Assembly: GCA_002269645.1 (NCBI GenBank)
Contig: NIVC01000666.1
Span: 248,001 to 312,000 of the forward strand
Origin: Macrostomum lignano
Taxonomy: Eukaryota
Reading direction: 5' to 3'
Length of the DNA stretch: 64,000 bases
The notes below the pieces were generated by a model, which was not told the origin of the DNA, made no database searches, and saw only the letters and a list, made by a program, of their open reading frames with translations. Shown piece by piece: positions 18,490-64,000 of this stretch (positions are counted from its first letter, which is position 1; every line of letters starts with the position of its first letter). Made by a program: the position numbers and the translations under genes.

Positions 18490-18576
18490 ATATTGGCAGA
18501 CGAAACGACTATATCGTATATTGGCAGACGAAAAGGCGGCAGACGAAAAGGCGGCAGACGAAATGACCGTCGAACC
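18490..18576. mobile_element. Single end of a DNA transposon with subterminal GGCAGACGAAA repeats (ends ...ATGACCGTCGAACC)
   Basis: Four GGCAGACGAAA copies ending at a TIR-like sequence; the partner end was not found. Confidence 0.3.
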
Positions 18577-20096: not shown

Positions 20097-20429
20097 TATA
20101 TATCTCTAGTCCTTGGTATGAGCTTCTATTATTCTACTTATAGACCTTGGTATGAGCTGCTGCCTCCCTTTGACTTATTTGTCTTAGCTAAAAGGTAGTC
20201 CAAAGACACAATGGGAAGGCAAGCATTGTCTATATCAGATACTACTAATCCCTGAGAAGCCCACATAGGCTAAGCACAGGGCTAGTCAAGGAAGACCTAT
20301 CTGCAATGTGGTCTTCAGTGGTAACTGGTAACAGTCTCATTTGGTAGCCTAGAGAAACTGGATGAGCTGTGGGATATTCTTGGGCTAGCAAGCATTGTAC
20401 AAAGATGGGTTAGGCCTAAGATAGTTGAG

Positions 20430-24790: not shown

Positions 24791-25104
24791 GTGAGGAGAT
24801 GATTGATAAGTTGAACACATCTATCTGTGTTTTTGATATGCGAGAGATTCAATCTATACTACTGAGAAAAAGTAGGCGAATAAAGATTTGAATTGTAAAA
24901 TCTCTCACATAACCCGAGAAATGTCGCCATAAAAGAAACGTCTGTGCCCACAGAGAGTAGATGTTTAAATCTTATTCGTCTACTTTCTCAGTAGTCTGAA
25001 TTGAAAATCTCCACAATAAAAGGTATCACTGTAAGGTTAGTAAAGCTTAGAATAATCGATTTATACCCATATTTCTGTGCCAAGAGAACACAGCAGTGAC
25101 TAGC

Positions 25105-26121
25105 ATGGACCGGCAGGCCAAGATAGAGAAGCTGAAGGCGCAGGTGGACTCTGTCCGTATCGGCGGCAAGGGCTCCGCCCGCCGCAAGAAGAAGGTTCTG
25201 CACAAGAACACTGGGACTGACGAGCGGAAGGTCACCGCCACGCTGAAGAAGCTGGGCGTCAATTCCATACCCGGCATCGAGGAGGTGAACATGTTCAAGG
25301 ATAACAACGAGGTCATTCACTTCAACAATCCCAAGGTGCAGGCCTCTCTGCAGGCCAACACCTTCGCCATCACTGGCCAGTCTGAGACCAAGCGGCTCAC
25401 CGAGCTGCTGCCCACAGTCTGGAACCAGATGGGGCCGGACAACTTCGCCAACCTCAAGAGGCTGGCTACTGGTGCCGGGGGCCTTGGTGAGTGCTGCAGC
25501 TGCTGCTGCGCTTTTTGCTGGGCTCTGGCGTTCACTTATCCTTCACCCATCCCTTCACCCATCCCACTTCACCCATCCCACTTCACCCATCCCTTCACCC
25601 ATCCCTTTACCTATCCCTTCACCCATCCCTTCACCCATCCCACTTCACCCATCCCACTTCATTCATCCCTTCACCCATCCCTTCACTCATCCCTTCATTC
25701 ATCCCTTCACTCATTCCTTCACCCATCCCCTCACTCACCCCTTCACTCATTCCTTCACCCATCCCCTCACTCACCCCTTCACTCATTCCTTCACCCATCC
25801 CCTCACTCACCCCTTCACTTATTCCTTCACCCATCCCTTCACTCATCCCTTCACCCATCCCTTCACTCATCCCTTCACCTATCTCCTCACTCATCCCTTC
25901 ACTCATCCCTTCACGCATCCCTTCACTCATCCCTTCACTCATCCCTTCACTCATCCCTTCACCCTCGTCACCCCGTAGGCCTGTCTCAGCCAGAGGAAGG
26001 CGCCGCTGGAGGCGCTGTCGACAGCGCTGGGACGGCGGCCTCGGGCGCTGCCGCCGCTGCCGACGACGACGACGTCCCGGAGCTGGTCGGCAACTTCGAC
26101 GAGGCCGCCAAGACCGAATGA
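25105..26121 (+). CDS. BTF3: Nascent polypeptide-associated complex beta subunit; exons 25105-25486, 25979-26121; 174 aa
   Basis: [52 protein letters not shown] and C-terminal [16 protein letters not shown]; phase-1 GT-AG intron. Confidence 0.97.
25530..25965. repeat. 12-bp minisatellite (ATCCCTTCACYC), BTF3 intron
   Basis: Tandem copies fill the intron. Confidence 0.93.
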
Positions 26122-27299: not shown

Positions 27300-29380
27300 T
27301 TGCCTGCCCTTCCCCTGTCCCCTCTCCCCCTCTTCCCTGTCCCCACTTCCCTATCCCCTCTTCCCTATCCCCTCTTCCCTGTCCCCACTTCCCTATCCCC
27401 TCTTCCCTATCCCCTCTTCCCTATCCCCTCCTCCCTATCCCCTCTTCCCTGTCCCCTCTTCCATATCCCCTCCTCCCTATCCCCTCTTCCCTATCCCCTC
27501 TTCCCAATCCTCTCTTCCCTATCCCCTCCTCCCTATCCCCTCTTCCCTATCCCCTCTTCCCTGTCCCCTCTTCCCTATCCCCTTCTCCCTATCCCCTCTT
27601 CCCTGTCCCCTCTTCCCTATCCCCTCTTCTCTATCCCCTCTTCCTTATCCCCTCTTCCTTATCCCCTCTTCCCTATCCCCTCTTCCCTATCCCCTCCTCC
27701 CTATCCCCTCTTCCCTATCCCTTCTTCCCTGTCCCCACTTCCCTATCCCCTCTTCCCTGTCCCCTCTTCCCTATCCTCTCTTCCCTATCCTCTCTTCCCT
27801 ATCCCCTCTTCCCTATCCTCTCTTCCCTATCCCCTCCTCCCTATCCCCTCTTCCCTATCCCCTCTTCCCTGTCCCCTCTTCCCTATCCCCTCTTCCCTGT
27901 CCCCTCTTCCCTATCCCCTCTTCCCTGTCCCCTCTTCCCTATCCTCTCTTCCCTCTTCCCTATCCTCTCTTCCCTATCCCTCCTCCCAATCCTCTCTTCC
28001 CTATCCCCTCTTCCCTATCCCCTCCTCCCTATCCCCTCTTCCCTGTCCCCTCTTCCCTATCCCCTCTTCCCTATCCCCTCTTCCCTATCCCCTCTTCCCT
28101 ATCCCCTCCTCCCTATCCCCTCTTCCCTATCCCCTCTTCCCTGTCCCCTCTTCCCTATCCCCTCCCTATCCCCTCTTCCCTATCCCCTCTTCCCAATCCT
28201 CTCTTCCCTGTCCTCTCTTCCCTATCCCCTCTACCCTATCCCCTCTTCCTTGTCCCCTCTTCCCTATCCTCCTCCCTGTCCCCTCTTCCCTATCCTCTCT
28301 TCCCTCTTCCCTATCCTCTCTTCCCTATCCCCTCCTCCCTATCCTCTCCTCCCTGTCCCCTCTTCCCTATCCCCTCCTCCCTATCCCCTCTTCCCTATCC
28401 CCTCCTCCCTATCCCCTCTTCCCTATCCTCCTCCCTGTCCCCTCTTCCCTATCCTCTCTTCCCTCTTCCCTATCCTCTTTTTCCTTATCCCCTCCTCCCT
28501 ATCCTCTCCTCCCTGTCCCCTCTTCCCTATCCCCTCCTCCCTATCCCCTCTTCCCTATCCCCTCCTCCCTATCCCCTCTTCCCTATCCTCTCTTCCTTAT
28601 CCTCTCTTCCCTATCCCCTTCTCCCTATCCCCTCTTCCCTATCCCCTCCTCCCTATCCCCTCTTCCCTATCCCCTCCTCCCTATCCCCTCTTCCCTATCC
28701 TCTCTTCCTTATCCTCTCTTCCCTATCCCCTTCTCCCTATCCCCTCTTCCCTATCCCCTCCTCCCTATCCCCTCTTCCCTATCCCCTCCTCCCTATCCCC
28801 TCTTCCCTATCCTCTCTTCCTTATCCTCTCTTCCCTATCCCCTCTTCTCTATCCCCTCTTCCCTATCCCCTCCTCCCTATCCCCTCTTCCCTATCCTCTC
28901 TTCCCTATCCCCTCCTCCCTATCCTCTCCTCCCTGTCCCCTCTTCCCTATCCCCTCCTCCCTATCCCCTCTTCCCTATCCCCTCCTCCCTATCCCCTCTT
29001 CCCTATCCTCTCTTCCTTATCCTCTCTTCCCTATCCCCTTCTCCCTATCCCCTCTTCCCTATCCCCTCCTCCCTATCCCCTCTTCCCTATCCCCTCCTCC
29101 CTATCCCCTCTTCCCTATCCCCTCTTCCCTATCCTCTCTTCCTTATCCTCTCTTCCCTATCCCCTTCTCCCTATCCCCTCTTCCCTATCCCCTCCTCCCT
29201 ATCCCCTCTTCCCTATCCCCTCCTCCCTATCCCCTCTTCCCTATCCTCTCTTCCCTATCCCCTCTTTATCCCCTCTCGCCTGTCACCTCTTCCCCCTCTT
29301 CTCACCCTCTTCTCTTTCTTTCCCGTCCTCTTCTCTGCCCTCTCCCCTGTCCCTCTTCCCAGTCCCATTTCCCTGATCAA
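27300..29380. repeat. ~2-kb polypyrimidine minisatellite (14-bp CCCCTCTTCCCTAT)
   Basis: Tandem copies; source of the 700-aa Pro/Leu/Ser pseudo-ORFs. Confidence 0.97.
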
Positions 29381-32400: not shown

Positions 32401-35400
32401 CCGGTAGGTTTTGAAAACACCCGGTAGGTTTTGGGAACTTTCAGTAGGTTTTGGGAACATCCGGTAGGTTTTGGGAACATCCGGTAGGTTTCGGGAACAT
32501 CCGGTAGGTTTAGGGAACATCCGGTAGGTTTGGGGAACATCCGGTAGGTTTAGGGAACATCCGGTAGGTTTTGGGAACATCCGGTAGGTTTTGGGAACAT
32601 CCGGTAGGTTTCGGGAACATCCGGTAGGTTTTGGGAACATCCGGTAGGTTTCGGGAACATCCGGTAGGTGTTGGGAACATCCGGTAGTTCACGGGCACCC
32701 CAGCGCGAACATCTCGGTCTCCCGCAGGCGCAGCTGAAGCGCCACTGGACAGACGACTCCAAACTGACAGAGGCGGAGCGCTACCTCCGGGACTTCATCA
32801 CCAAGGAGTTCTGGCGCCGGCGGCGGCAGCGCCAGCAGCAACCGGCAGAAGCGCCGTCTGAGTCGAATTCGGAGGCCGCCCTGTCCGAAGACGAGGCCTT
32901 CTTAACCAAACAGTCCGAGTTCGAATCCCGTTGGAACGGCCGGACAGACGAGCGAGATCCGGAGTTCGAGTCCGGCTTCCAGCGCACCTTTGCCAGCGGA
33001 GACGGGCAGCTGGACGGAGACTCCGATGACGATGAGCTGTTCGTGGCCAAGAAGGCCTGCCCGGCGACTGCCCAGGAGCTCGAGCTGGACGAACAGACCG
33101 CTGAACTGCTGCGGCTGGAGGAGCGGCGAGGCCGGAAGCCTCCACAGCCGGCAGGCGAGGATGAGGAAGCTGAGCGGCTGCCGGATGATGACGATGAGGC
33201 AGCTGGGGGCGAGGCTGGGGAGGCTGGCATCCGCAGCTACCCTCGCCGAATCGGCGATTCGCTTCGCCAGTCGACCGCCGACGCCGACCGGTCACGCCGT
33301 CGCGCCGAGCTCCGGGAGCGTCGGCGGGCGGATCGGCTGACCAGGCGGCGCGAGTTCGACGCGGCGGCCAGGATGAAGGCAGCCGAGCTGGAGCGGCGGC
33401 TGGAGCGGCTGCGGCGAAATGCCGGCATCGGCGACGTCGCCAAGGACTGCGAAGGCGAGGACGAGGCCGGCCGGGACCGACTGGCCGACACCCTGGGCGG
33501 CGACTTCCTCGACGAGGACTTCGACCCGGTCGAGCACGACCGCCGGATGGCCAGCCTGTTCGGCGAGGATTTCTACGGCGAGGCTCACGGTGACGAGAAG
33601 GCGGCGAAGAAGCCGCAGTTCAGCGAGGACGAAGATGAAGGCGAGGGCGAGACCGGCGAGTCGGTGGAGGAGCTTCGCCGCAGGCTGCAGGACGAGGCCG
33701 ACCGGCTTGGGGCGGAGGATCTGATCCGGGCCGGCCCCGGGGAGGCCGACCTGCCGTGCCGGTTCAACTATCGGCAGGTGAGCGGCGGGTTCACAGGCTC
33801 CGTTCACGGACTGTTCACACACTATTCACAGACTGTTCACACACTATTCACAGACTGTTCACACACTATTCACAGACTGTTCACACACTATTCACAGACT
33901 GTTCACACACTATTCACAGACTGTTCACACACTATTCACAGACTGTTCACACACTATTCACAGACTGTTCACACACTATTCACAGACTGTTCACACACTA
34001 TTCACAGACTGTTCACACACTATTCACAGACTGTTCACACACTATTCACAGACTGTTCACACACTATTCACAGACTGTTCACACACTATTCACAGACTGT
34101 TCGCACACTATTCACAGACTGTTCACACACTATTCACAGACTGTTCACACACTATTCACAGACTGTTCACACACTATTCACAGACTGTTCACACACTATT
34201 CACAGACTGTTCACACACTATTCACAGACTGTTCACACACTATTCACAGACTGTTCACACACTATTCACAGACTGTTCACACACTATTCACAGACTGTTC
34301 ACACACTATTCACAGACTGTTCACACACTATTCACAGACTGTTCGCACACTATTCACAGACTGTTCACACACTATTCACAGACTGTTCACACACTATTCA
34401 CAGACTGTTCACACACTATTCACAGACTGTTCACACACTATTCACAGACTGTTCACACACTATTCACAGACTGTTCACACACTATTCACAGACTGTTCAC
34501 ACACTATTCACAGACTGTTCACACACTATTCACAGACTGTTCACACACTATTCACAGACTGTTCACACACTATTCACAGACTGTTCACACACTATTCACA
34601 GACTGTTCACACAATATTCACAGACTGTTCACACACTATTCACAGACTGTTCACACACTATTCACAGACTGTTCACACACTATTCACATACTGTTCACAC
34701 ACTATTCACAGGTTGTTCACACAATATTCACAGACTGTTCACACACTATTCACAGACTGTTCACACACTATTCACAGACTGTTCACACACTATTCACATA
34801 CTGTTCACACACTATTCACAGGTTGTTCACACTCCATTCAGACTGTTCACACTCCATTCACAGACTGTTCACACCATTCACTGACTGTTCCCACACTATT
34901 CAGACTGTTCACACACCATTTACTGACTGTTCACACCATTCACTGACTGTTCACACCATTTACCGACTATTTACACACCATTCACAGACTGTTTACACCA
35001 TTCACAGACTGTTCACACTTAATTCACATATTGATCCTACTCTATTCACGCTCACATTCACCGACTCCATCCCCTGTCAGGTGGAGCCCAATGATTTCGG
35101 TCTGAGCGCCGTGGAGATTCTGCTGGCAGACGACCGGGAGCTGAACAGCTGGTGCTCGGTGCGCAAGGCCAGCCAGTACCGCGAGCGCGAGGCCGACTGG
35201 CGCGACCGGCGCCGATTTCGAAGCGCGCGCGCTCAGGAGCGCAAGACGCAACTCATGCCCGGCATGATGAAGCGGCTGGAGGCTGCGGCGGCCTATCCGG
35301 ACGCGAGGGCCTGGGCCGCAGCAGCCGCCGCCGGGCTGGACTTGGCGGGCGAGCCGGCCGGCGCGGCAGTTCAAAAGAAACGCCGGCGAAAGAAGCGAAA

Positions 35401-35716
35401 GCAGCAGCAGCAGCAGCAGGCGAAAGAAGAAACTGGAGAAGACGCTGAGCAGCAGCCGCGTTCGCGGAAGAAGCGACGCCTCCTATCGCAGCCTGAGCAG
35501 CAGGTTGCGGCAGCCGGTTCACAAGCCGCAGAATCAGCAACTACTTCGCAAAAGCAGAAGACGGTGCAGCAGAAAATTAAGAAGCACCAGAAGCAGAAGA
35601 AAAAGCCGGGCTCTGACGGGCGACTGCAGATCAGCGAGCAGCGACTGGCGGAGCTGGGCATCGATCCCAGGCAGTTCCGCCGGATGCAGAAGCAGAAAAA
35701 AGCTTCAGCATCGTGA
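29455..35716 (+). CDS. KRI1: KRI1 homolog (40S biogenesis factor); exons 29455 (or 29485)-29554, 30930-31263, 31390-31491, 31922-32126, 32728-33777, 35081-35716; ~800 aa
   Basis: [103 protein letters not shown]; all splice phases agree. Confidence 0.95.
29715..30895. repeat. 16-18-bp minisatellite (CAATCAGGCAGTGACACA) with higher-order duplications, KRI1 intron 1
   Basis: Tandem copies. Confidence 0.95.
31510..31770. repeat. C-rich repeat (CTCTCCCTCCGCC), KRI1 intron 3
   Basis: Tandem degenerate copies. Confidence 0.88.
32121..32690. repeat. Two successive 20-bp minisatellites (CTGGTAGGGTTTGAGTAGAT, then CATCCGGTAGGTTTTGGGAA), KRI1 intron 4
   Basis: Tandem copies starting at the donor site. 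Confidence 0.95.
33800..35020. repeat. 22-bp minisatellite (TTCACAGACTGTTCACACACTA), KRI1 intron 5
   Basis: Highly homogeneous tandem copies. Confidence 0.97.
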
Positions 35717-48500: not shown

Positions 48501-51500
48501 GAACAGGCGGTCGTAGATGGCCTTGGCCAGGGCGTCCCTGGCGTAGGTGGCCTGCGGCAAGTCGTAGGCCTTATCGACCGAGTCGCTGGCCGTCACAATG
48601 CGCCGGGAGGTCAGCGCCTTGACGAGGCCGTCGGGCGGCACTCTGAGCAGGCCGGCGAGCTGCGCCACGGCCTGGCGGCACGAGGACTTCACCCGAACCG
48701 AGCTGTTGCTCCGGTCCTCCGGGTCGGCCTCGTACTCCATGTTGCCCTGCGAGTTTGAGTAACCCCCGAATTAGGCTGCCTGTCTACGGGAATTCGAGTT
48801 CAAGACCAACAGTGGCAGGTGACTCACCAGCAGCATGACGGCAGCGGTGACCCTCAGGCAGCTGTCCTTCTCGTCCGATGAGAACTGAACGGAGTCCATG
48901 GCCTGCGTCACTTTGCGGAAGTTGGCGGCGTCCTCCTTCTGAAGGGAGGCGGGTGTGGTCAGTGAGCAAATCTGTGTGGTGAATCCGTGAGTGAGTGATT
49001 GAATCATACCTGAAGTGATTGAATCCGTGAGTGATTGAATCCGTGAGTGAGTGAATCAGTGAGTGAATCAGTGAGTGAATCAGTGAGTGAATCAGTGAGT
49101 GAATCAGTGAGTGAATCAGTGAGTGAATCAGTTAGTGAATCAGTTAGTGAATCAGTGAGTGAATCAGTGAGTGAATCAGTGAGTGAATCAGTGAGTGAAT
49201 CAGTTAGTGAATCAGTTAGTGAATCAGTGAGTGAATCAGTGAGTGAATCAGTTAGTGAATCAGTGAGTGAATCAGTGAGTGAATCAGTGAGTGAATCAGT
49301 TAGTGAATCAGTGAGTGAATCAGTGAGTGAATCAGTTAGTGAATCAGTTAGTGAATCAGTTAGTGAATCAGTGAGTGAATCAGTTAGTGAATCAGTGAGT
49401 GAATCAGTTAGTGAATCAGTTAGTGAATCAGTGAGTGAATCAGTGAGTGAATCAGTTAGTGAATCAGTGAGTGAATCAGTCAGTGAATCAGTCAGTGAAT
49501 CAGTCAGTGAATCGGTCGGTCAGATAGGTATGTAAATCAGTGAGTTTGGTGAGTGAGCCAGCGAGATTGGTGAGTGAGTCAGTGAATCGGTGAGTGAGTC
49601 AGTGAATTGGTGAGTGAGTCAGTGAATCGGTGAGTGAGTCAGTGAATCGGTGAGTGAGTCAGTGAATTGGTGAGTGAGTCAGTGAATCGGTGAGTGAGTC
49701 AGTGAATCGGTGAGTGAGTCAGTGAATCGGTAAGTGAGTCAGTGAATCGGTGAGTGAGTCAGTGAATCGGTGAGTGAGTCAGTGAATCGGTGAGTGAGTC
49801 AGTGAATCGGTGAGTGAGTCAGTGAATCGGTGAGTGAGTCAGTGAATTGGTGAGTGAGTCAGTGAATCGGTGAGTGAGTCAGTGAATCGGTAAGTGAGTC
49901 AGTGAATCGGTGAGTGAGTCAGTGAATCGGTAAGTGAGTCAGTGAATCGGTGAGTGAGTCAGTGAATCGGTGAGTGAGTCATTGAATCGGTGAGTGAGTC
50001 AGCTCACCCCCAGCGCAGCGCAGCCGCCCTGCACCAGATACGCGAAGTCGCGCAGGGAGCCCTGCGGCAGGCCCAGCCGTTTTCTCTCCGTCTCGGGCAG
50101 CCCCGCCAGCATCTGGTAGAAAATGTGAAAGTTGCGCTCCCCAGCCTGCTGGTGCACAACGCGGCTCTTCTCCAGCAGGTAGTTCCGCATGCTGCCACCG
50201 GCGGGGTCGCCTTTGAAGTCGAACATGATGTCCATGTACTTGCCGAACCGGCTGGAGTTGTCGTTCCGCGTTGTCTGCGCGTTGCCGTAGGCCTCCAGCA
50301 GGCTGGTGGACTGGATGAGGATCTCCGCTACCCTGGATGAAGATCATTGTGTGAGTCATCGGAGTGCTGGGATCATTGTGTGAGTCATCGGAGTGCTGGG
50401 ATCATTGTGTGAGTCATCGAGTGCTGGGATCATTGTGAGTCATCGAGTGCTGGGATCATTGTGAGTCATCGAGTGCTGGGATCATTGTGAGTCATCGAAT
50501 TTGGGTCATAGAATCGGGGGCATTGTGGGTCATAGAATCGGGAGCATTATGGGTCATACATGTATAATCTGGAGCATTGTGGGTCATAGAATCTGGAGCA
50601 TTGTTGGTCATAGAATCTGGAGCATTGTGGGTCATAGAATCTGGAGCATTGTTGATCATAGAATCTGGAGCATTGTGGGTCATAGAATCTGGAGCATTGT
50701 GGGTCATAGAATCTGGAGCATTGTGGGTCATAGAATCTGGAGCATTGTGGGTCATAGAATCTGGAGCATTGTTGGTCATAGAATCTGGAGCATTGTGGGT
50801 CATAGAATCTGGAGCATTGTAGATCATAGAATCTGGAGCATTGTGGGTCATAGAATCTGGAGCATTGTGGGTCATAGAATCTGGAGCATTGTGGGTCATA
50901 GAATCTGGAGCATTGTTGGTCATAGAATCTGGAGCATTGTGGGTCATAGAATCTGGAGCATTGTGGGTCATAGAATCTGGAGCATTGTGGGTCATAGAAT
51001 CTGGAGCATTGTGGGTCATAGAATCTGGAGCATTGTGGGTCATAGAATCGGGAGCATTGTGGGTCATAGAATCTGGAGCATTGTGGGTCATAGAATCTGG
51101 AGCATTGTTAGTCATAGAATCTGGAGCATTGTGGGTCATAGAATCTGGAGCATTGTGGGTCATAGAATCTGGAGCATTGTGGGTCATAGAATCTGGAGCA
51201 TTGTGGGTCATAGAATCTGGAGCATTGTGGGTCATAGAATCTGGAGCATTGTGGGTCATAGAATCGGGAGCATTGTGGGTCACAGAATCTGGAGCATTGT
51301 GGGTCATATAATCTGGAGCATTGTGGGTCACAGAATCTGGAGCATTGTTGGTCATAGAATCTGGAGCATTGTGGGTCATAGAATCTGGAGCATTGTGGGT
51401 CATAGAATCTGGAGCATTGTGGGTCATAGAATCTGGAGCATTGTGGGTCATAGAATCGGGAGCATTGTTGGTCATAGAATCTGGAGCATTGTGGGTCATA

Positions 51501-53426
51501 GAATCTGGAGCATTGTTGGTCATAGAATCTGGAGCATTGTTGGTCATAGAATCTGGAGCATTGTGGGTCATATAATCTGGAGCATTGTTGGTCATAGAAT
51601 CTGGAGCATTGTTGGTCATAGAATCTGGAGCATTGTGGGTCATATAATCGGGAGCATTGTGGGTCATAGAATCGAGAGTATTGTGAGTCACAAGAAGAAC
51701 AAGAAATGAAAGTCAATATTAACAATCGCGATATAATAAAAAATAAAAGCACAGAAATTGGTGAGTTTGATTAAGTGCAGACTTCCTCACAAGGCCTGAG
51801 TCACAAGCCGTGAGCTGCCAGTCCCATAGCCGGGTCAGGGCGTGCAGATTGCGCAAAAACTGCAACCACCTTCCCTCAGCTAATAGACGGAGACCGGAAA
51901 ACCTGGGGCATAGAAATTGCAACATTTTCGCTACATTTCAATTTGCTGCATTCGAGTCCGAGAAATGAATGAGCGCCTTGGGCCGCACACCTCATTTCTT
52001 CATCTTTTAGTTTTACTTTTCAGATTGTTTTGTTTTAGTTTTCGTCGCGATTGTTGTTTAGTATAGTGGAAGAAAAATGAAACTACTACAGTTAATAAAA
52101 ATTTAAATACGCATTTAATCATAAAGCTATAACAAAAGTACACATCAATAAGACAACTCTCGTATCATTGTACTTCGTGTTAGATTTTTATTTCATTTTT
52201 AAAGTACATGTGCACTTTTGTCGGAGAAAAGTCAAAGTCTGAATAATATTGCATTAAAAAGGCTTAGAGACTTTTCATCGAGCAAATATTAGTACACATG
52301 TACTTTTGTCTAAAAGTACACAGCAGTACTAACCGATCCACCTGAGCTCGAACTCGCTGCCGATCGATCGATCGACTCTGCCGGGAGCCGGCGGGTGCGG
52401 CCCCAGCACCGAAGGCGGCATTGTGGGCTAAATACTGCAGAATGACTTTGCTGGCCTCTGTCTTGCCAGAACCGCTCTCACCGGAGATCAGAATGCAGGT
52501 GTCCTGCCCGAATCTGGCCAGAGTTTTGTGCGCCGTGTCCGCCACCCAATAGATGTGCGGCGGCCGCTCGTAGCGCTCTCGGTTTCGATAGTCCGCAATG
52601 TACTTTTCAGTGTAGAGCTGCAGGTCTCGATAGGGGTTCACGGAGACCAGAATCTCGCCAATATAGGTGTAGATCTTGTTCTTAGCGAATCTATGATGGT
52701 TTAATGTTCAAATTACAGTTATAGGACCAAGTTTTCTAAAATAAGCAGATATCAATTTTTCAATTCACATCTAAGTAAAAGCCAAACCCAAAGGCTGAAT
52801 TACTTCTTTTGACTAAAATGCAAGTATGCATAAAAAAAAATATTTCAATCAAAATTAACTAAATTTATAACAAAATTTTACATTTTCTGTCCTAAAATGA
52901 ACTAAAATTACATCAAGTAAGTATAAAGTTAACAAATCGAATAAGTAAGTTTTAAAAGCTAAAATCTAAAATTCAATAAACCATTTAAATAGAGCAACTT
53001 TTCTAAATCTACTGCTAAGTAAATACTGATAATAAATATCCTCTTTTATCAAAGAATTGCAGCCTAATTTTTTGGTAACTAAATTAGGTATAGTCCAAAA
53101 CATCTTCCATACATATTTCTTCAATCTTCAACACTACAAATCTTCAACACTACAAAAAATTAAATGAACAAAATACAGCCTTTCATAATAAAGAGAACTA
53201 AAAATTATTAGCTACATTTCAACTGGTTAAAGTAAGTCTTTGCTTCACGTTTTTTATCAAGAAAACAGCGGAAAATATATGCGTAAAACGGCACTTATTT
53301 TGTGCCAGGATGGCGGTTGTGGACTCACCGTTCTTGAAGGTTTTCGACAATGTCCTCGTTGGTAAGAGTGTCGTATAAAATAAAATCAGATATTCCAACT
53401 CTATCTTCGTTGCTCTGCCCTTCCAT
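36539..53426 (-). CDS. MYO1D: Class I myosin, MYO1D/G type; exons complement(53329-53426, 52334-52690, 50008-50332, 48828-48938, 48376-48746, 47449-47563, 41899-42221, 39569-40088, 38607-38672, 37305-37949, 36539-36793); ~1061 aa
   Basis: [18 protein letters not shown]-like [10 protein letters not shown]-loop [34 protein letters not shown] motifs and a TH1 tail ([20 protein letters not shown]); all phases agree. Assignment to subclass D rather than G is by resemblance only. Confidence 0.93.
36850..37300. repeat. 23-bp minisatellite (ATATCCGCTCCCCATCCGCCCCA), myosin intron 10
   Basis: Tandem copies. Confidence 0.94.
39235..39550. repeat. 20-bp pyrimidine minisatellite (CCCTTCATCTCCCTTCCCGT), myosin intron 8
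   Basis: Tandem copies. Confidence 0.92.
40095..40520. repeat. 31/33-bp minisatellite (GTGTTTATGGAGGCCGGGTCTGGTCTAGAGC), myosin intron 7
   Basis: Tandem copies. Confidence 0.95.
41120..41890. repeat. 38-bp minisatellite (GGGTAGACAGGCACAATCTACAGAAAGGTAGATAGGAR), myosin intron 7
   Basis: Tandem copies. Confidence 0.96.
42275..43660. repeat. Two adjacent 20-bp minisatellites (GGGATCACGTAGGATCAATT; GAGAGTCAGTTAGGGTCACT), myosin intron 6
   Basis: Tandem copies; switch near 42560. Confidence 0.96.
44060..47375. repeat. Three polypurine arrays (44060-45110 mixed; 45950-46485 15-bp GGGAGAGGCACAGAA; 46930-47375 12-bp GGGAGAGAGGAA), myosin intron 6
   Basis: Purine-rich tandem arrays separated by unique blocks. 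Confidence 0.95.
47690..48330. repeat. 15/16/23-bp minisatellite built on ACTCAAACCTGAAG, myosin intron 5
   Basis: Tandem copies with three unit lengths. Confidence 0.95.
49030..50005. repeat. 12-bp (GTGAGTGAATCA) and 20-bp (CAGTGAATCGGTGAGTGAGT) minisatellites, myosin intron 3
   Basis: Tandem copies. Confidence 0.96.
50335..51690. repeat. 27-bp minisatellite (GGGTCATAGAATCTGGAGCATTGTG-type) plus a related ~27-30-bp array, myosin intron 2
   Basis: Tandem copies; source of the MTHNAPDS pseudo-ORF. Confidence 0.96.
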
Positions 53427-56135: not shown

Positions 56136-59100
56136 CTACTGAAACCTGATGAGGTACCTCGGCGCCGCCTGCTCCGGTCGGTACACAATGTACTCATCGT
56201 TCAGCACTCCTCCTGTGCCCTTCGTGTTCCGTCTGGCGAACACCGAGTCGTAGCCGGCACCATTGACGGCACTCAGGTTCAGGTGGTTCTGCGGCTTGTC
56301 GCACACCATCGTTCTCCCAAGTAGGACGTCGCAGAGCAGAAGCGACATTGTTCCGGACTCGCAACAGTACTGAATACTCTTCGTGGTGTCCGTGGCAAAG
56401 TAGATCCCTGCACCGTACATTCCACGTGAGCCCACCTTGAATCCTTCTTTGATGATGAGCTCGGCGATTGCGTTTCTAGTTCCATGGAAGAACAGCTCTG
56501 GAACGGCGTCCTTCTTGACCAGCTGGCTGCTCACATCCAGAAGACGTCGGTCTAGAGCTGGGTTCTCAATCTTCTCGATGCTCAGAATTGCTCTCACCGT
56601 GACTGAGTGCTCACTCTTGATGTACCGCATCACCCGATCGTGCACTTTGAAGTATTCGACTGCCGTGTTCTCGTCGGTCTCCGTCAGCATTTTTCGCTTG
56701 ATTTCGCTTCCATGAGCTGACTGCAGCTGGCGCAGCCTCATCTGCTTCTCCAAACCCCAACAGGCAGAGCACGACTGACCCTCAAGCAGTCTGGCAAGAG
56801 CGCAGCAAGCAACTGTCTCTTCGTGACCGCACTGAAACTTCTTGGTCACATCGGTGAGACATTCTTCAGAAAGCTCCCAGCACTGACACTCATGGCGACA
56901 GAGTTTCCTAAATGCCTTCTCCGGACATGGAGGACAGGGCGAGGTTGAGCACACAGACTGGCATTTGTGTCCACACGGCAGCGTCTTCTCGCATTGTCTC
57001 TTACACGCAGCCAGCGACGCTGTGGAAGATTGGCTGCACGGAGTTCTGAGCGCGTGATCACACGAGAGCTTCACAGTCCTAATTCGGTCACAATGAGTTT
57101 GATTCTTCCCACACGGACTCCCAAATTGCTCTTTGCATGCGAGGCACCGTTTGGAAACGTTCACGATGCACAGCTGAGGAGAGCAAGTCTCGAAACACTT
57201 CTGTGTGCATTGGTGGCCACACGGCAGCTTCTTGGAGCACGTTTCTGTGCACTTTACGATTTTGTATTTCGTATTTTTCGTATTACTTTGTATTATTTTC
57301 GTATTTCGTATTACTTTCTTCCACTCAAAGCACAGCATTTGCTTCACGTGTCCACACGGCAGAGTCTTTGCAACAGATTCTTGGCATGTTCCAAACGGCT
57401 GGTTGCACAGCTTGGATTGGACGTGGCCGCAGCTCAGCTGAGCTTCGATATTCTGGGTGCAGTGCTTCGAATCACATATTTCTGAGCACTTGAGCGGACA
57501 AGGATGACCACAACTCAGCATGCGAATGCACTTTTCTTCGCATTTCAAGTGCCTAGGGTCTGATGACAAGAAGCACTGGATTTTTGTGGTGTGTGAGCAC
57601 GGCAGCTTCACAATGACCATTTTGTCGCACCGATCATGCTCATGCCAAGGCTGGCACAGCTTCGGACAGACGTGTTCACCACATGGCATGGTTTCCACGC
57701 ACTTGCTTCTGCAGAAGACTCCCTTCATTCTAGACAATTCGGCTGCACTTCTCCAGCTGTGCTCTGTTCCGTGCTTCCGGCACACCACCGGAAAGTCGGA
57801 TCGCAGAACGCCGTCCTCCTCAAAAGCGGTCAGCAGCTGGCTCCACTCGGCGCACTTTCTCAGCAAAGAAGCTTTGCCGATGAAGACCAGACCGCAGTGC
57901 GACCTCGACTGCGCGACGCATCGGCGGTTGAGCGATGCGAGAAATCCGGGCTTCTCGCTGCGAACAAGCGACACCAAGACAATGTCGTTCTCGTCGCCTT
58001 GGTACACATCGATACTGTGCACTTTGATGAAGCCTTCGTTAGCCTCATTCGCGAGTGCTGAACGATTTGAAACGTCTCTCTCCCAATCCTCCAAACGTGG
58101 TCGCAGTTCCCGTCGGATGAGCCGCACCTGGCCCTGATACGGAGTGAGGATGGTGAGCTGGCTTGGCTTGTACCCGAACCTCAGGAACGTCATCGCTACT
58201 TCAACGATCAGCTCTGCCTCACCGTCGTTAACGTAGCTTCGCTCGCCTGACTCCGACATGTTCTTTACGTCCCAGAATGCAACGGCCTTCGGCATGAACG
58301 ATGGAATGTCGTGACCCTTCACGCTGTCTATATTGTCCTGCAGGTCCGGATAGACGTCGAGTTTCAGATACTTGGAAATGTCAGGTCGCATTCGGTTCTG
58401 GAACTGTAAGCAGTCAAACGGAAAACCGCAGTTGATCAGTCTCTCCATCATCGAGACATCCAGGTGGCAGTGCTTCACTAGCTCATAGTTCTCGACGGTC
58501 GGCCGAAGCTGCTTGTGATCACCGATCAGGAAGAGTCGCTCCGTCCAGTCACCAAGACAGCCAAGAAGCATTGGCTCCATGATCTCTGCTGCTTCCTCCA
58601 CAATAACTGTGTTCGGTCTGAGCCTCTTCAGCAACTCGTTATTGATTGAAGCACCCGTGATGGTCATCGCAATCACGTCGACATCTTGACAGATCTTGAC
58701 ATCTCTGTTCAAGTTAGCTTCCTTGTACTCGTCTCGATGTCGTTCATACTGTCTGAACAAAAAGTTCAGTTTGGAGCTGTGTCTCGTCCAAGCTTTGTCA
58801 AAGTGGTCCAACAAGCAACCCTGCATGAACAGAAATCGGTCTTCAGGCTTGAGCTCCCACAGGTTTTGGGTGTAGCGCAACGTATGCCATTTCTCTGAGA
58901 CGATTCGAATCAGTCGTTGGTCCAGTCTCACGGGGCTGGGTTCTTGCTGACTCAAGTTCAGGCTGAAGGTGGTTCGACTGTCTCCTCCTGAAGCCAGAAG
59001 CCGCTCTGTCTTTATCTGTTCCTGTTCGTCGTTGAGTTCGTCCTCTTCTGCCTCTTCGTCAGTCTTATTGGTCGTGCCGCTGCTCGCAGTGCAAGAGCCT

Positions 59101-61604
59101 GTCTGCAATGCCTGAAGCAGATTTGGCATGAACTTATCAATTACATACTGTGGCGGAATCCACTGCCGCACAGCAAACCTCAGCTTATCGATAGGATTAG
59201 GCAATCCTGCGAGTTGGCTTCGATATTTGATTCCGGCCGGGTGATAAAAAAACTGTTTGCAGAATCGGATTTGGTTCTCTTCACTCCAAAATTTGGACAG
59301 GAAGAGCTCATCAAAAAATATACTTTCCTGAAGACAAACATTTTCCAGATGTTCCAACAGAGCTTTCTTCGCATCATCAACAAGACGCCACTGTTCCCTG
59401 GAGTCCGTGTCCTGCACGGCGTCTCTCCTGGAGCGGATGTCTAAATCTTTGGTTAGCTCAGTCTTCTTTGAACGACCACCAAAGCGAATCAAGTCGACTT
59501 TCGAACTTTGCTGCGTGAGAATCTTACGAATGAACTCGTCTAAAGCGTTGTTCTTGTAGGTGACCAACAGAACGGGACCATTCCTGTGTCTCTTGGTCTC
59601 CTGCGCTGTGAGGTACCTCACGAGGTGTGTACCAACGTAGGTCTTTCCACAGCCTGGCGGTCCCTGGATGACGGAGATTTTTCGCTGAGTACAGTTTCTA
59701 AACGCTTGCGTTTGCGACTCATCTAACCGACTGGAGATCTCGTCTTTAAATAATTTAATCGCGCTTTTCTCACGTTGAGCAGATGAAAGCCTCGATCGTA
59801 GAATACCTGAGTGAGGCCATCTAGAGGTTAAAGAGTCTCGCGAATAAGCCAGCACATCTGACTCTGCTGGCTCATCTTCACTGTCTGATTCTTCCACTTG
59901 TATTGAATCGAAAGTGCACGACACCAGCTCCTTCTCCAGTGGCAACGTCTTGCCGTTCAGAGCCTGCACGTTTGCCAGCACGTGCCGGTAAGCTTGGAAG
60001 TAAGTCGGAGACTCGGCCAACCACAGACTCGACTTCTGAAGTCGAAGCCGTCGTAGCAGATCACACAGCTCAATGCTGCCCGATTCGAATATCGGCTCGA
60101 CAAAGATCAGACCGAACTGGTTCAGCAGACCGGAGTCCCTGTTACTCACCGTCACGCAAACAAACTCTGTGAAAGTTTCGTCAAACGACAAGCAGAGCAA
60201 ATTTCCGAACATCAGCAACGGAGACTTCTCCCAGTTTTTCACCACCCTATTGAACGGCTCGATCTTGAGCACCAAGGACAACTCTTTGTGAGTAATATCG
60301 ATGCCTCTGAGCTCGACTTGATGGTAGACTGTCATGTCTCGGCGATTCAAATTGCCGCCAATGAACTGCTGGATGCCGGATCTCAGCTTCTCGAAGCAGT
60401 CCGCACGCAGCAGCTTCAGGTTCGTCTCGAGATAATCGGCCACCGAGTCGTACGGAGCATGAGTTTGCATTGGCGGAAGCAGCCGGATTGTCTCGCCCAT
60501 GTCGGTCGAGCTCAACACCTCCTCCTTACTCAAGGTGGCTGACAGCTCGTGCCAGCTCAGGTCGGAGTTTCTCACTGGCAGGAACCTCCGGCACATCAGC
60601 TTGGCCAGCTCGAAAGCATCTTTGCCAGAAAAGTGAGTGTCGTAGAACTGCTGGCACAGCTGCATGATGAGGTAGCATCTGTCTGGAACCAGCTGACCAA
60701 CCATCTCGCAGAACGTCTTGAGTGTACTCACTTTGTCTGCTGAGTACCTTTTGCTCGCTGCCTCTGTGAACAGCTGGCGACAGGCGCCTCGATCGAGCTG
60801 GAAGTTCTTCTCGTGCATGAGATGCTGGATGCTCAGGCCGATGTCGCGCTGCTGGTATGCACTCGCTCTACTGTTGACTCGTACGAAGAACTCCAACACA
60901 GTGTACAGCGAGTCAGCACTCAGTCGGGGCCACTGACCGACGATCGACCAGCCAGGAGGAACCTCCAGCAACTGCTGAATGTCTCTGTTACTCGTCTTGC
61001 TACTCAGCGACTCAATGAAGCTGCTGACTTTTTGATCGCTTCGTTGGACGGGCTTCTCCAGCCGCATGTCCATTGTCGGCTTCTGGCCAGGCTTCGCCTC
61101 GCGCGGTGTGCAGGTGACCTGGTCTCCATGCTCGGGGTCCCAGCCGCTAAAGTACAGCTTCCGAGGCAGAACTGTTTGCTTACCGGTGTCGGTCGTCACG
61201 TGGTATATTTTCAATGGCCTATCGTCAAGCACGTGGCTGTTCGTAATAGTCCCTGCGATTATCGGACGAACCATTAGTTGTGTAGCCACTTGTTGCTTTT
61301 GTGCCTGCAGTTGAGCCGCTTCTTGTGAAGTGTTTGAAGGCAAGTCAGCTACTTGGGATGAGGCTTCAGGTCGCGAGCTGCCCAATGGAGCCCGGCTGAT
61401 GTCGACCGCAGATGTTTTGTTTCCTTTGTGCTCGATTCGGTACCGCAGCCTGTCTCCAACCTGCAGGTTGAGCTGCTGAACCCAGTAGTACCAGAAAATG
61501 ACCCCGTGGCGGGCTGACGGGTCATCCTCAAACGATACAAATCCATGTTTGCCCAGTGTGATGCTGCTGACGTAACCTAGAGAAGCAGATGGCAAAAATC
61601 GCAT
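56136..61604 (-). CDS. ZNFX1: ZNFX1-like SF1 helicase / NF-X1 zinc-finger protein fused to a C-terminal PARP-type ADP-ribosyltransferase domain; 1822 aa, single coding exon
   Basis: IQGPPGCGKT, VIVEEAAE, LIGDHKQLRP, QNRMRP, ILTPYQGQ, IDVYQGDENDIVLVSLVRS, SLNRRCVAQSR; many CGH.C...C zinc fingers; FHGT...GMYGAGIYFA...KS.QY...DEYIVY. An in-frame TAG lies 12 nt before the ATG. The symbol denotes family, not proven orthology. Confidence 0.93.
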   Translation of the reverse strand: MRFLPSASLGYVSSITLGKHGFVSFEDDPSARHGVIFWYYWVQQLNLQVGDRLRYRIEHKGNKTSAVDISRAPLGSSRPEASSQVADLPSNTSQEAAQLQAQKQQVATQLMVRPIIAGTITNSHVLDDRPLKIYHVTTDTGKQTVLPRKLYFSGWDPEHGDQVTCTPREAKPGQKPTMDMRLEKPVQRSDQKVSSFIESLSSKTSNRDIQQLLEVPPGWSIVGQWPRLSADSLYTVLEFFVRVNSRASAYQQRDIGLSIQHLMHEKNFQLDRGACRQLFTEAASKRYSADKVSTLKTFCEMVGQLVPDRCYLIMQLCQQFYDTHFSGKDAFELAKLMCRRFLPVRNSDLSWHELSATLSKEEVLSSTDMGETIRLLPPMQTHAPYDSVADYLETNLKLLRADCFEKLRSGIQQFIGGNLNRRDMTVYHQVELRGIDITHKELSLVLKIEPFNRVVKNWEKSPLLMFGNLLCLSFDETFTEFVCVTVSNRDSGLLNQFGLIFVEPIFESGSIELCDLLRRLRLQKSSLWLAESPTYFQAYRHVLANVQALNGKTLPLEKELVSCTFDSIQVEESDSEDEPAESDVLAYSRDSLTSRWPHSGILRSRLSSAQREKSAIKLFKDEISSRLDESQTQAFRNCTQRKISVIQGPPGCGKTYVGTHLVRYLTAQETKRHRNGPVLLVTYKNNALDEFIRKILTQQSSKVDLIRFGGRSKKTELTKDLDIRSRRDAVQDTDSREQWRLVDDAKKALLEHLENVCLQESIFFDELFLSKFWSEENQIRFCKQFFYHPAGIKYRSQLAGLPNPIDKLRFAVRQWIPPQYVIDKFMPNLLQALQTGSCTASSGTTNKTDEEAEEDELNDEQEQIKTERLLASGGDSRTTFSLNLSQQEPSPVRLDQRLIRIVSEKWHTLRYTQNLWELKPEDRFLFMQGCLLDHFDKAWTRHSSKLNFLFRQYERHRDEYKEANLNRDVKICQDVDVIAMTITGASINNELLKRLRPNTVIVEEAAEIMEPMLLGCLGDWTERLFLIGDHKQLRPTVENYELVKHCHLDVSMMERLINCGFPFDCLQFQNRMRPDISKYLKLDVYPDLQDNIDSVKGHDIPSFMPKAVAFWDVKNMSESGERSYVNDGEAELIVEVAMTFLRFGYKPSQLTILTPYQGQVRLIRRELRPRLEDWERDVSNRSALANEANEGFIKVHSIDVYQGDENDIVLVSLVRSEKPGFLASLNRRCVAQSRSHCGLVFIGKASLLRKCAEWSQLLTAFEEDGVLRSDFPVVCRKHGTEHSWRSAAELSRMKGVFCRSKCVETMPCGEHVCPKLCQPWHEHDRCDKMVIVKLPCSHTTKIQCFLSSDPRHLKCEEKCIRMLSCGHPCPLKCSEICDSKHCTQNIEAQLSCGHVQSKLCNQPFGTCQESVAKTLPCGHVKQMLCFEWKKVIRNTKIIQSNTKNTKYKIVKCTETCSKKLPCGHQCTQKCFETCSPQLCIVNVSKRCLACKEQFGSPCGKNQTHCDRIRTVKLSCDHALRTPCSQSSTASLAACKRQCEKTLPCGHKCQSVCSTSPCPPCPEKAFRKLCRHECQCWELSEECLTDVTKKFQCGHEETVACCALARLLEGQSCSACWGLEKQMRLRQLQSAHGSEIKRKMLTETDENTAVEYFKVHDRVMRYIKSEHSVTVRAILSIEKIENPALDRRLLDVSSQLVKKDAVPELFFHGTRNAIAELIIKEGFKVGSRGMYGAGIYFATDTTKSIQYCCESGTMSLLLCDVLLGRTMVCDKPQNHLNLSAVNGAGYDSVFARRNTKGTGGVLNDEYIVYRPEQAAPRYLIRFQ

Positions 61605-61834
61605 TGTTGATTCCTAATTTCTGAGTTGGGGAAAAGATGTTTAAAAGATTGTCATGGCCTACCAAAAGTAGACTGATATACCGTCTTCTCTTCACCCTGA
61701 TGGGAAGCGACCTGCCTGCTCAGTTTCCCACACAGTACACTAGTTTTCTTCTGCTTATCTGAGTAACTTCATTCCAAAAAGTTTCATTCATTTCTCAGCT
61801 TCATCCACATCAACTTCAGTGTAGAAGCACACAG

Positions 61835-62076
61835 TGCAAGCACACTTCAGTGGATAGTAGCACACAATGTATGCAAGCACACTTTAGTGGATAGTAGCAC
61901 ACAATGTATGCAAGCACACTTTAGTGGATAGTAGCACACAATGGAGGGTTCATCGGAAGTCAGAGTTTAAGGCAATGGAGGGTTCATCGGAAGTCAGAGT
62001 TTAAGGCAATGGAGGGTTGGCGGCGGTAGCCGCTCGTGTCAATTAGGCCATTGCCTTAAACTCTGACTTCCGATGA
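61835..62076. repeat. 37-bp x3 and 34-bp x2.3 direct repeats ending in a perfect 29-bp inverted repeat (61984-62012 / 62048-62076)
   Basis: TCATCGGAAGTCAGAGTTTAAGGCAATGG ... CCATTGCCTTAAACTCTGACTTCCGATGA with a 35-nt loop. Confidence 0.95.
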
Positions 62077-62332
62077 GCATCATTGCTAAAAATTTCAAAA
62101 CTCTTACGTAATCTACGCACTTTATGTACACTATCGTGAATTCTTATCAGTCGATGCTTCTAAGGGGGTTTGAAATAAGGTTACCTCCACCTCGCCTATG
62201 TCTCACCTTTAAGTCGCGCACCTGAAGTCACCCACCCCTTACTCTGCACCCACCCCTAAATTAATTACAAATATAAATATTTGCGTGTCTAGAGATCAAA
62301 TCTCAGATAGAGAAAAGCGGACGGCTGCAGAG

Positions 62333-63822
62333 ATGGAGGCACCGCTCATTAATTGGAAGCATTTGCCCTGCAGTGAGCTGGGCAACGTGACTAAGGACGA
62401 ATTGAATTTTGTTTCGGAGGCTTCTTACAATGACAGAAGGGACGACGAGTTCGCTAGATTTCTCGAATTCATTCAAAAGGAGCCCGAGCCCGATGAGCAT
62501 CTGCCGCTCCTGCAGGAAGGCGGCGTAGATATCAGCGCCATGGACATCGCCGAGATTGACAGCCTACCAGCAGACAGCAGGAAGCAGATGATCAGCCATG
62601 GACAGCGGTTCAAGACATTCCTCACAGAGGAAAATCTTCAGCGCAATTTACAAACCATTCCGAATTCGGTGCTCAACCAATACATTCGCTACTTCTACTT
62701 TAAACTGAAGAAGATTGACGGCGAACCCTACTCTCCTGCATCGCTGGTGTGCATCAGGGCTGGACTGCAGCGCTATTTGCGGATGATCGAGAAGCTAACC
62801 GTTGACATCATCAATGGAGAAGACTTTTCTTCTGCAAATAGCATGCTGCGTGTGAAGGTTCGAGACTTTCACCAGAGTGGTGGGAGGACGCAGCAGTTTG
62901 AGCCAATCGAGGAGGGGGACATGAGGAAGCTGATGATCTACTTCCAAGGCAGCACAGCTGAAGTTGAGCAGGACAAATTCTTATTCTACATCATATACAG
63001 CTTTGGCGAGCGAGGCCAGGAGCACCTCAAGTTCTTGAAGGATAGAAGCTCACTTCAATTGCACGTCGACTCTGATGGAAAGCCGTACTACTGTCTGCCT
63101 CCGTTGCCCTCGAAAAATAAGTCAGCAGATCCAGAGAAGGCCAAGAAGCAGCCGGACAACAAGCAGGCCAGAATTTACGACGTGGAAAAGGTGGAGAAAT
63201 ACCTCAAGCTGCTTCCAGTTACAACGAAGGACAACAATCTGTTTCCTCGTCCTTTGGCCAGCCGCAACGATGAAGGCCCTGTTTTCTCCTCGAAGCAGAA
63301 CCGTGGAGAGAATTATCTGAGTGGCTTCATGAGAAACTTGAGTACGAAGGCGGGACTTGCGAAGACCTACACGAATCATTGCATTCGGTAAGACTGATAA
63401 ATTAATAATAGTAACTTTAATTATGTTATGATACATGTTATGTTACCAGTTACTCATGAATCCAACTATATAAATTTGCACTCTAAAACAGGGTCACGCG
63501 AATATGCGATCTCGAGGCGGCAGGGCACAGCATGAGCGATATAATGAGCATTACTGGACAGCTGAGCGAGCGAACGACTAGGAGGTACCTAGCCAAGCGT
63601 CGCGACCGGTCGCTTCAAAAGACGAGTGAGTCTGTTCAGGTGGCGTTGAATCGTCATGATCTAGAGCAAGAAGCTGGGCCACCCGAACATGCTGATGCTG
63701 TTGAGATTGTCGGTGAGACTGCAGTATCGACGGAGGTTAGTGTTAGCACTGAAGCTGCCTATTCTGTTGGTACGAAGTTTGCCTTCAACAATTGCACCTT
63801 TCACGGATGTTCCTTTAATTAG
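62333..63822 (+). CDS. Crypton-type tyrosine recombinase (DUF3504-like); exons 62333-63387, 63492-63822; 461 aa
   Basis: LKKIDGEPYSPASLVCIRAGLQRYL, FGERGQEH, SKNK, RGENYLSGFM, YTNHCIR|VT, SITGQ...RRY and C-terminal FAFNNCTF; phase-2 GT-AG intron inside the HxxR arginine codon. Confidence 0.88.
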
Positions 63823-64000
63823 GCATGCAATCTTTACTTCTACAGGAATCAGCAAATTGTACTCGTAGAATTACTGAAAGAATAAGAACGACAGTCTAGT
63901 TTAATATTTTTTATTTAATGACTTTTAGTACTTTGCTCGACCAGTATGATGTTCATCACCGACAAAAATTTACATGATATACTGACACCAGCTGTGCTTT

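Follow-up and report, generated by a model that had tools for sequence, protein, structure and literature searches.

A ZNFX1-like helicase that ends in a PARP-type ADP-ribosyltransferase domain in Macrostomum lignano, and the family to which it belongs

Results and discussion

One open frame joins a ZNFX1-like helicase and a PARP domain

The stretch of DNA analyzed in this work, the window, comprises 64,000 nucleotides from the flatworm Macrostomum lignano (assembly GCA_002269645.1, contig NIVC01000666.1, positions 248,001 to 312,000), and its minus strand carries a gene in which a ZNFX1-like superfamily 1 (SF1) helicase is followed by a PARP-type ADP-ribosyltransferase (ART) domain; we will refer to it as the helicase-PARP gene. 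It is contained in a single open reading frame (ORF) of 1822 aa that runs without interruption (56136..61604, minus strand). Positions are those of the window and residues are those of this ORF. From the 5' to the 3' end, the features of the gene are the following:

61577-61598, minus: 3' splice site; polypyrimidine tract tttttgccatctgcttctct, then AG at 61578/61577
56136-61576, minus: giant 3' coding exon; ORF residues 10-1822 and the stop codon (56136-56138)
61395-61577, minus: putative cold-shock-like (CSD/OB) domain, diverged, residues ~10-70; weak match to a family profile
60084-60341, minus: ZNFX1 domain (PF25396), residues 422-507; Pfam E 2.5e-13, 50.4 bits against a cut-off of 27
58494-59726, minus: SF1 helicase lobe 1 (AAA_11), residues 627-1037; Pfam E 5.8e-29
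57870-58463, minus: SF1 helicase lobe 2 (AAA_12), residues 1048-1245; Pfam E 1.7e-31
56757-57782, minus: Cys/His-rich array of NF-X1-type fingers, residues ~1275-1616; pattern matches and alignments
56139-56747, minus: PARP-type ADP-ribosyltransferase domain; Pfam PF00644 at residues 1650-1821, residues 1620-1822 modelled
56484-56486, 56400-56402 and 56193-56195, minus: catalytic triad of the PARP domain, His1707, Tyr1735 and Glu1804, respectively

The first-pass annotation of this DNA had taken 56136-61604 as the complete ORF; the uninterrupted frame and its stop codon stand, but the start probably does not, given that the real exon begins after 61577. Similarity to the M. lignano database proteins P0001 and P0002 begins at 61577-61580, where the DNA reads tttttgccatctgcttctctag/GT TAC GTC (the slash marks the exon boundary). 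This is a standard 3' splice site, and the intron that ends there is in phase 1 and splits a Gly codon before Tyr. In the P0002 locus an intron ends at the matching codon position (cacag/GC TAC), and the body of this paralogue is also one exon, collinear with residues 10-1821 of the window ORF. The ATG of the ORF (61602-61604) sits just upstream of the polypyrimidine tract; because of the acceptor at 61578/61577 this first ATG is probably not the start codon, and most likely it is intronic, the beginning of the ORF being a mechanical boundary only.

Both P0001 and P0002 extend upstream of the residues GYVSS into a sequence rich in arginine-glycine-glycine (RGG), and the RGG-rich 5' exon of the window gene lies outside the window. 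In a tblastn search of the window this exon was not found in 61605-64000, the matches elsewhere being low-complexity repeats only; a second copy of the gene, described below, also lacks it in the 5.3 kb that precede this copy. The region upstream of the acceptor includes a 368-aa ORF on the opposite strand (62285-63391, plus) with a weak QRICH1-type domain (E 8e-5, under the Pfam cut-off), and a 37-bp tandem repeat beside it (61835-61943). This ORF may derive from a transposon, perhaps a Crypton-like one, and represent a gene that has been domesticated or is decaying; it probably lies within the first intron of the helicase-PARP gene, and could account for the remoteness of the 5' exon.

Helicase and NF-X1-type fingers

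The first-pass annotation had read in this frame SF1 helicase motifs, an NF-X1 zinc-finger array, and a C-terminal ART with the His-Tyr-Glu (H-Y-E) triad, and the three were found, well above what chance would give. Besides the AAA_11 and AAA_12 matches of the two helicase lobes, the Walker A motif GPPGCGKT is present at residue 648 (59640-59663) and motif II, VEEAAE, at residue 1002 (58584-58601). The AAA_11 match takes 411 residues to cover 253 profile positions; therefore, lobe 1 carries a large insertion, similar to the one that has been described in ZNFX1. Within lobe 2, the sequence GFLASLNRR has a Phe and an Arg with a conservation of 90% or higher in the family alignment, and with the same spacing as the ZNFX1/UPF1 RNA-binding pair F1210/R1216, whose role in RNA binding was reported in a recent preprint (10.1101/2025.09.05.674436); judged by this spacing, they would be the counterpart of the human pair. 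The best solved relative of the helicase-finger part is human ZNFX1 (9q9z_A, E 2e-91), and UPF1 is found at E 8e-34.

The alignment to 9q9z_A continues through the zinc-finger part of this structure up to its last residue, 1451. The Cys-rich region of the window protein has four matches to the NF-X1 finger pattern (residues 1308, 1365, 1462 and 1544), and it is similar to the finger array of vertebrate ZNFX1 (BLASTP E 2e-11). The Pfam profile zf-NF-X1 did not match this region even at E <= 10; since vertebrate ZNFX1 is likewise without a zf-NF-X1 match in its precomputed domain list, this result was not counted against the presence of NF-X1 fingers.

At the other end of the exon product, a cold-shock domain (CSD) profile made from the family gave a weak match to residues 16-64 (11 bits, E 1.7e-5 for one target), Pfam CSD (PF00313) had no match in the window ORF, and the AlphaFold2 model of the N-terminal 192 residues, obtained from a 4-sequence alignment, was uninformative, with a predicted local distance difference test (pLDDT) of 35. 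P0001 is named 'CSD domain-containing protein' in UniProt.

The PARP domain

The C-terminal domain matches PF00644 with 71.8 bits (curated cut-off 26.7, E 7e-20), and its His, Tyr and Glu, located at the codons where the triad had been placed, align on the triad of tankyrase-2. Residues 1620-1822 were modelled by AlphaFold2 with a pLDDT of 90.7 and a predicted template modelling score (pTM) of 0.86, and the model has an ART fold; Foldseek retrieved 383 matches in the PDB at E <= 0.001, headed by the catalytic domains of tankyrases 1 and 2 (E 2e-17, TM 0.77), and followed by PARP4 (E 1e-15). The echo of a tankyrase motif that had been pointed out is also there, GMYGAGIYFATDTTKSIQY being opposite GMFGAGIYFAENSSKSNQY of tankyrase-2. 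In contrast, the term tankyrase-like is adequate for the catalytic fold and not further, given that PARP4 scores equally (the sequence matches in the PDB have E-values of 1e-10 for PARP4 and 7e-10 for tankyrase-2) and that the ankyrin repeats, the SAM domain and the zinc loop of tankyrases are not present. No Pfam match to Ank or SAM was obtained in the ORF at E <= 0.1, nor any to the accessory domains of PARP4, and the zinc-loop segment of tankyrase-2, GCPVHKDRSCYICH, lies opposite a gap and a few residues without Cys or His, so that the loop is deleted in the window protein. In summary of this comparison, the tankyrase and PARP4 catalytic domains are the nearest ART folds and share with our domain the H-Y-E triad and the motif GxGIYFA, but the identity is of ~26%. 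By sequence, it is closest to PARPs that are short or fused and make up a subfamily of their own, found in flatworm, octocoral, cryptophyte, haptophyte and environmental eukaryotes.

The sequence, the triad included, does not discriminate between mono- and poly-ADP-ribose as the product; PARP3 and PARP4 carry H-Y-E and yet are regarded as mono-transferases.

The PARP domain stands in the place of the E3 module of ZNFX1

Human ZNFX1, an antiviral helicase, is an RNA-stimulated E3 ubiquitin ligase, and its ubiquitin chains drive aggregation and the entrapment of RNA, including viral RNA (10.1101/2025.09.05.674436, 10.1101/2025.10.14.682297). According to these 2025 preprints, its E3 modules are a Z-RING/Miz-like E2-binding domain (residues ~1533-1632) and a C-terminal RZ finger. 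A Z-RING profile built from 19 ZNFX1-like proteins matched 20 ZNFX1-like relatives that are devoid of PARP (E <= 1e-13), whereas neither this profile nor phmmer gave a match in the window ORF or in any PARP fusion. Similarly, a query with the RZ region matched only proteins without PARP and no fusion; the RZ finger PF20173 is listed for vertebrate ZNFX1 and not for the fusions, and the window protein ends at the PARP domain. Because Z-RING and RZ are both missing from the fusions, we consider the PARP domain a replacement: as judged from domain content, the PARP domain or domains occupy the place of the entire E3 module, in an effector swap on a conserved sensor and not an addition. The protein is not to be seen as a ZNFX1 that has merely gained one more domain.

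The window protein has the helicase, the ZNFX1 domain and the fingers, and lacks the two E3 modules; for this reason we place it in a predicted ZNFX1-like paralogous branch, and not as an orthologue of ZNFX1. In a neighbour-joining tree of helicase lobe 2, evaluated by a rooting-free split test with 100 fast bootstraps, the 69 PARP proteins all fall on one side of a single split and the 19 Z-RING proteins all on the other, with modest bootstrap support. Canonical ZNFX1 and the flatworm protein have in common the ZNFX1 domain, a UPF1-like helicase that bears a large insertion, and NF-X1-type fingers after the helicase; they probably also share a logic in which a helicase that binds RNA is connected to a modifying enzyme at the C-terminus. 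In contrast, the flatworm protein shows a PARP domain in place of Z-RING/RZ and a putative N-terminal domain of cold-shock type, and its paralogues carry an RGG exon; its identity to vertebrate ZNFX1 is of ~31% over one third of the protein.

A widespread family of helicase-PARP proteins

Residues 1040-1822 were searched against 1.84 billion representative proteins (clusters at 50% identity), and 448 matches were obtained at E <= 1e-30. Local domain mapping of the best 150 of these 448 representatives identified a ZNFX1-type helicase together with PARP in at least 91, and three further representatives have diverged PARP domains that were missed by the phmmer scan. Most of the fusions among the representatives mapped carry two PARP domains in tandem, and the flatworm proteins have the first one only. 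According to Pfam, PARP, AAA_11 and AAA_12 are present in each of 25 full-length members, the ZNFX1 domain in 22, and CSD (PF00313) in 10, with a best E of 2.9e-12. The layout of the family is, from the N-terminus, (RGG-rich exon), cold-shock-like domain, ZNFX1 domain, UPF1-like helicase, NF-X1-type fingers, and the PARP domain(s). Some of the members, with the names given to them in the source, are:

Limulus polyphemus, XP_013775656.1: uncharacterized protein
Hydractinia symbiolongicarpus, XP_057299698.1: NFX1-type zinc finger-containing protein 1-like
Symsagittifera roscoffensis, XP_063714960.1: uncharacterized protein
Sycon ciliatum, XP_065186319.1: uncharacterized protein
Taxus chinensis, KAH9314167.1 (P0099), on a 785-Mb chromosome record: hypothetical protein

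Therefore, such fusions are indeed present in automated annotations, a possibility that the first-pass annotation had left open, where they figure as uncharacterised or ZNFX1-like proteins. The architecture is not specific to invertebrates, and also occurs in a gymnosperm and in many further eukaryotic contigs. Full-length members are present in a gymnosperm genome (the above mentioned P0099 of T. chinensis, and P0024, eukprot Gb_32246). The spread over sponges, cnidarians, acoels, flatworms, chelicerates and gymnosperms suggests an old eukaryotic invention that was possibly lost in vertebrates and in the classical model invertebrates; this loss would explain why the family has not been studied. 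No description of a ZNFX1-PARP or helicase-PARP protein was found in the literature covered, outside of which falls the survey of Blasi et al. 2022, where a mention is possible; the PARP-family surveys examined do not mention a PARP linked to a helicase, and the ZNFX1 preprints 10.1101/2025.09.05.674436 and 10.1101/2025.10.14.682297 do not mention PARP. As far as checked, the fusion is in public annotation yet uncharacterised.

Short proteins of the PARP subfamily were found as well, in an octocoral, a cryptophyte and a haptophyte. Many of its environmental fragments start with finger motifs of the CGHxC type, and therefore these are truncated fusions. A homology search with a profile of the PARP domain retrieved only proteins under ~370 aa and no full-length fusions. 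In a eukaryotic contig (ENA ERZ25069859 ctg21175, L001), positions 10001-15379 hold an intronless member of 1792 aa with two PARP domains, which is flanked by reverse-transcriptase fragments. Single giant exons seem typical of the family, M. lignano included.

The H-Y-E triad is kept in the first PARP domain of 58 of 69 members; in the second domain His and Tyr are kept and the third triad position varies. The retention of the triad across very distant taxa argues for retained catalysis, and the PARP domain is found exactly where ZNFX1 has its effector, the E3 module. These two facts make unlikely, in our opinion, that the domain is a regulatory or auto-modifying mono-ART, or a module that binds NAD+ or ADP-ribose and tunes the helicase, in a protein whose core job would be housekeeping in RNA decay or germ granules. 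What speaks for this proposal is that the triad of the first domain has been lost in 11 of the 69 members, that in most relatives the third position varies in the second one, and that H-Y-E enzymes can be mono-ARTs; in addition, an RGG-rich N-terminus, as that of P0001 and P0002, is typical of granule proteins. Caenorhabditis elegans ZNFX-1, a germ-granule helicase of the ZNFX1 family that is also without the RZ finger, traps RNAs in nucleoprotein granules (as cited in 10.1101/2025.10.14.682297). This nematode protein acts in the inheritance of small RNAs, and no PARP domain has been reported for it. An N-terminus rich in RGG, as in the flatworm paralogues, would be suitable for such a granule protein.

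Copies, paralogues and transcripts in M. lignano

The closest database proteins to the helicase-PARP ORF are from M. lignano itself. P0001, a gene model that was annotated separately, is near-identical (its best local alignment has 92% identity), and P0002 is a paralogue with 38% identity that keeps the full architecture. An exact look-up of the 1822-aa product had no match on record. P0001 skips in-frame segments of the window ORF; for residues 756-831 the possibility that the skipped segment is an intron was rejected, given that it is homologous to coding sequence of P0002 and includes W815 and P817, which are invariant across 25 family members.

The GenBank annotation of GCA_002269645.1 was built on a transcriptome assembly based on RNA-seq. 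Gene model P0002 (1858 aa) goes from RGG through PARP, and P0045, which is 98% identical to the window protein, from the helicase lobe through PARP; since the annotation derives from transcripts, both models support one mRNA that spans helicase and PARP, as had been proposed, in sister copies of the window gene. This result bears on whether a helicase gene and a small neighbouring PARP gene could share a frame by chance, and be read as one. True stand-alone PARP genes do exist in M. lignano, three of them within 8 kb in the locus listed below, and many transcripts of this species are trans-spliced; nevertheless, there is no stop codon between helicase and PARP, the same domain order recurs in the representatives from distant taxa counted above (at least 91), and the transcript-derived models span the junction, and for these reasons we consider such an artefact extremely improbable.

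In contig NIVC01001462.1 (L002) three stand-alone PARP-only genes of the same subfamily are located within 8 kb, and beside them is a PARP protein of 939 aa in which a faint match to spectrin was seen. The coordinates of this cluster are:

4508-5083: minus
10154-10774: plus
11505-12068: plus
18176-20786: plus

In M. lignano there is expansion and shuffling of this PARP domain.

A second copy of the helicase-PARP gene is present in NIVC01000666.1 (positions 5320-10691 of locus L004), with 97% DNA identity to 56139-61577 of the window over most of its length. This copy is a mosaic, with a very strong divergence in residues 745-835 (dS about 2) and an identity of only 50% in residues 10-156, which suggests recombination or gene conversion among paralogues, as in fast-evolving gene families. 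The ratio of non-synonymous to synonymous substitution rates (dN/dS) between the window gene and the 97%-identical copy is 0.34; this value and the layout kept by P0002 speak for conservation of the gene.

That the window locus itself could be a decaying duplicate, an open frame no longer in use in a highly redundant genome, is an explanation that has to be weighed against these data, and we think it very unlikely. The M. lignano assembly is extensively and near-identically duplicated, the copy just described has a TAG opposite Glu854 of the window protein, the 2.4 kb upstream contain a transposon-like ORF and no 5' exon, and the exact product is not on record. Against it, the frame of 5.4 kb is intact with all the catalytic motifs, the dN/dS value with respect to the other copy is 0.34, and P0001 is a near-identical gene model.

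Proposed function

The reading that we favour, to which we assign a probability of about 0.6, is that the window protein belongs to a ZNFX1-like helicase-PARP branch in which RNA-activated ADP-ribosylation would take the place of the RNA-activated ubiquitination of ZNFX1; the RNA-triggered ADP-ribosylating sensor-effector of the first-pass annotation is thus a reasonable proposal. By analogy with ZNFX1, whose E3 ligase is switched on by nucleotide-dependent RNA binding, the helicase would bind RNA, aided by the CSD and RGG parts, and this binding would activate the ART; the latter would then ADP-ribosylate its own protein and/or components of the bound ribonucleoprotein, possibly RNA. The RNA marked in this way could be sequestered or silenced, and plausible settings for this are defence against viruses or transposons and the small-RNA pathways of germ granules. 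ZAP/PARP13, PARP12 and PARP14 also have RNA-binding modules N-terminal to the PARP catalytic domain, and their participation in conflicts between host and virus is established; in contrast, their modules are CCCH fingers, WWE, RRM or macro domains, they are mostly non-H-Y-E, and have no helicase.

Several points weigh against this reading. RNA activation, the targets, and the biological role of the helicase-PARP family are proposed by analogy with ZNFX1. The transcript evidence concerns sister copies, and the 5' exon of this copy is outside the window. The L004 copy has the nonsense codon mentioned above, and not every copy of the gene may be functional. The CSD assignment of the window protein is weak (11 bits), its N-terminal model being uninformative, and the bootstrap value of the split between Z-RING and PARP proteins is also weak (30% exact, and 56% if one stray is allowed). 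Finally, H-Y-E is no guarantee of polymerase activity, and the loop from GF to GMYG is short in the window protein.

A variant of the mechanism concerns the substrate. In this case the helicase would load or translocate on RNA and the PARP domain would ADP-ribosylate an RNA end or base, so that foreign RNA could no longer be translated, replicated or ligated. In favour of this variant are the covalent link of the ART to modules that bind RNA (CSD-like, SF1 helicase) and the fact that several enzymes of the PARP family modify phosphorylated ends of RNA or DNA with ADP-ribose in vitro. There is also a precedent for an RNA substrate in the sister family, given that canonical ZNFX1 ubiquitylates RNA in vitro (work cited in 10.1101/2025.10.14.682297). 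However, no feature observed discriminates between an ART directed to RNA and one directed to protein, and the nearest folds, tankyrase and PARP4, are protein modifiers, so that a nucleic acid as the substrate seems to us improbable. In a broader version of the favoured reading, the helicase-PARP proteins would be an ancient eukaryotic sensor, which does with ADP-ribose what ZNFX1 does with ubiquitin in the quarantine of RNA: the helicase, when loaded on foreign or aberrant RNA, would switch on the tethered H-Y-E ART, and the latter would build scaffolds of poly-ADP-ribose around the RNA or modify the RNA itself; we put this forward as a tentative and rather doubtful possibility. If true, a ubiquitin ligase and an ADP-ribosyltransferase could be exchanged as effector cassettes on a common sensor, a kind of modularity that is best known from bacterial defence systems.

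With respect to RNA-activated ADP-ribosylation as the favoured function, a sister family that keeps the sensor (helicase and fingers) and swaps E3 for PARP would represent a natural experiment on the coupling of sensor and effector. A helicase-coupled class would be added to the PARP family, ubiquitin and ADP-ribose signalling would be linked in RNA surveillance, and a tractable test system would follow, given the tools available in M. lignano, which supports RNA interference and transgenesis. The interest lies in the helicase-PARP family more than in the window locus.

Other features of the window

Minisatellite arrays are found throughout the window (47 rows with a Tandem Repeats Finder score >= 200), and they cause strong local GC/AT skews and many spurious long ORFs. 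The tandem-repeat content of M. lignano has been reported to be 15%, and the arrays of the window are consistent with this value. Four of them are:

23522-24716: minisatellite, 28 bp x43
27307-29294: minisatellite, 14 bp x144
33803-35018: minisatellite, 22 bp x56
50502-51690: minisatellite, 24 bp x49

A KRI1 homologue is encoded at 32668-35716 (plus) in two ORFs, with matches to Kri1 (E 1.7e-16) and Kri1_C (E 1.2e-15). The two ORFs are separated by the 22-bp minisatellite at 33803-35018, and partly read through it; either this array lies in an intron or it has expanded in frame inside the gene. A NAC-domain exon (PF01849, E 1e-24) of a BTF3/NAC-beta homologue is located at 25096-25530 (plus), and its ORF continues into a 12-bp repeat (25540-25964).

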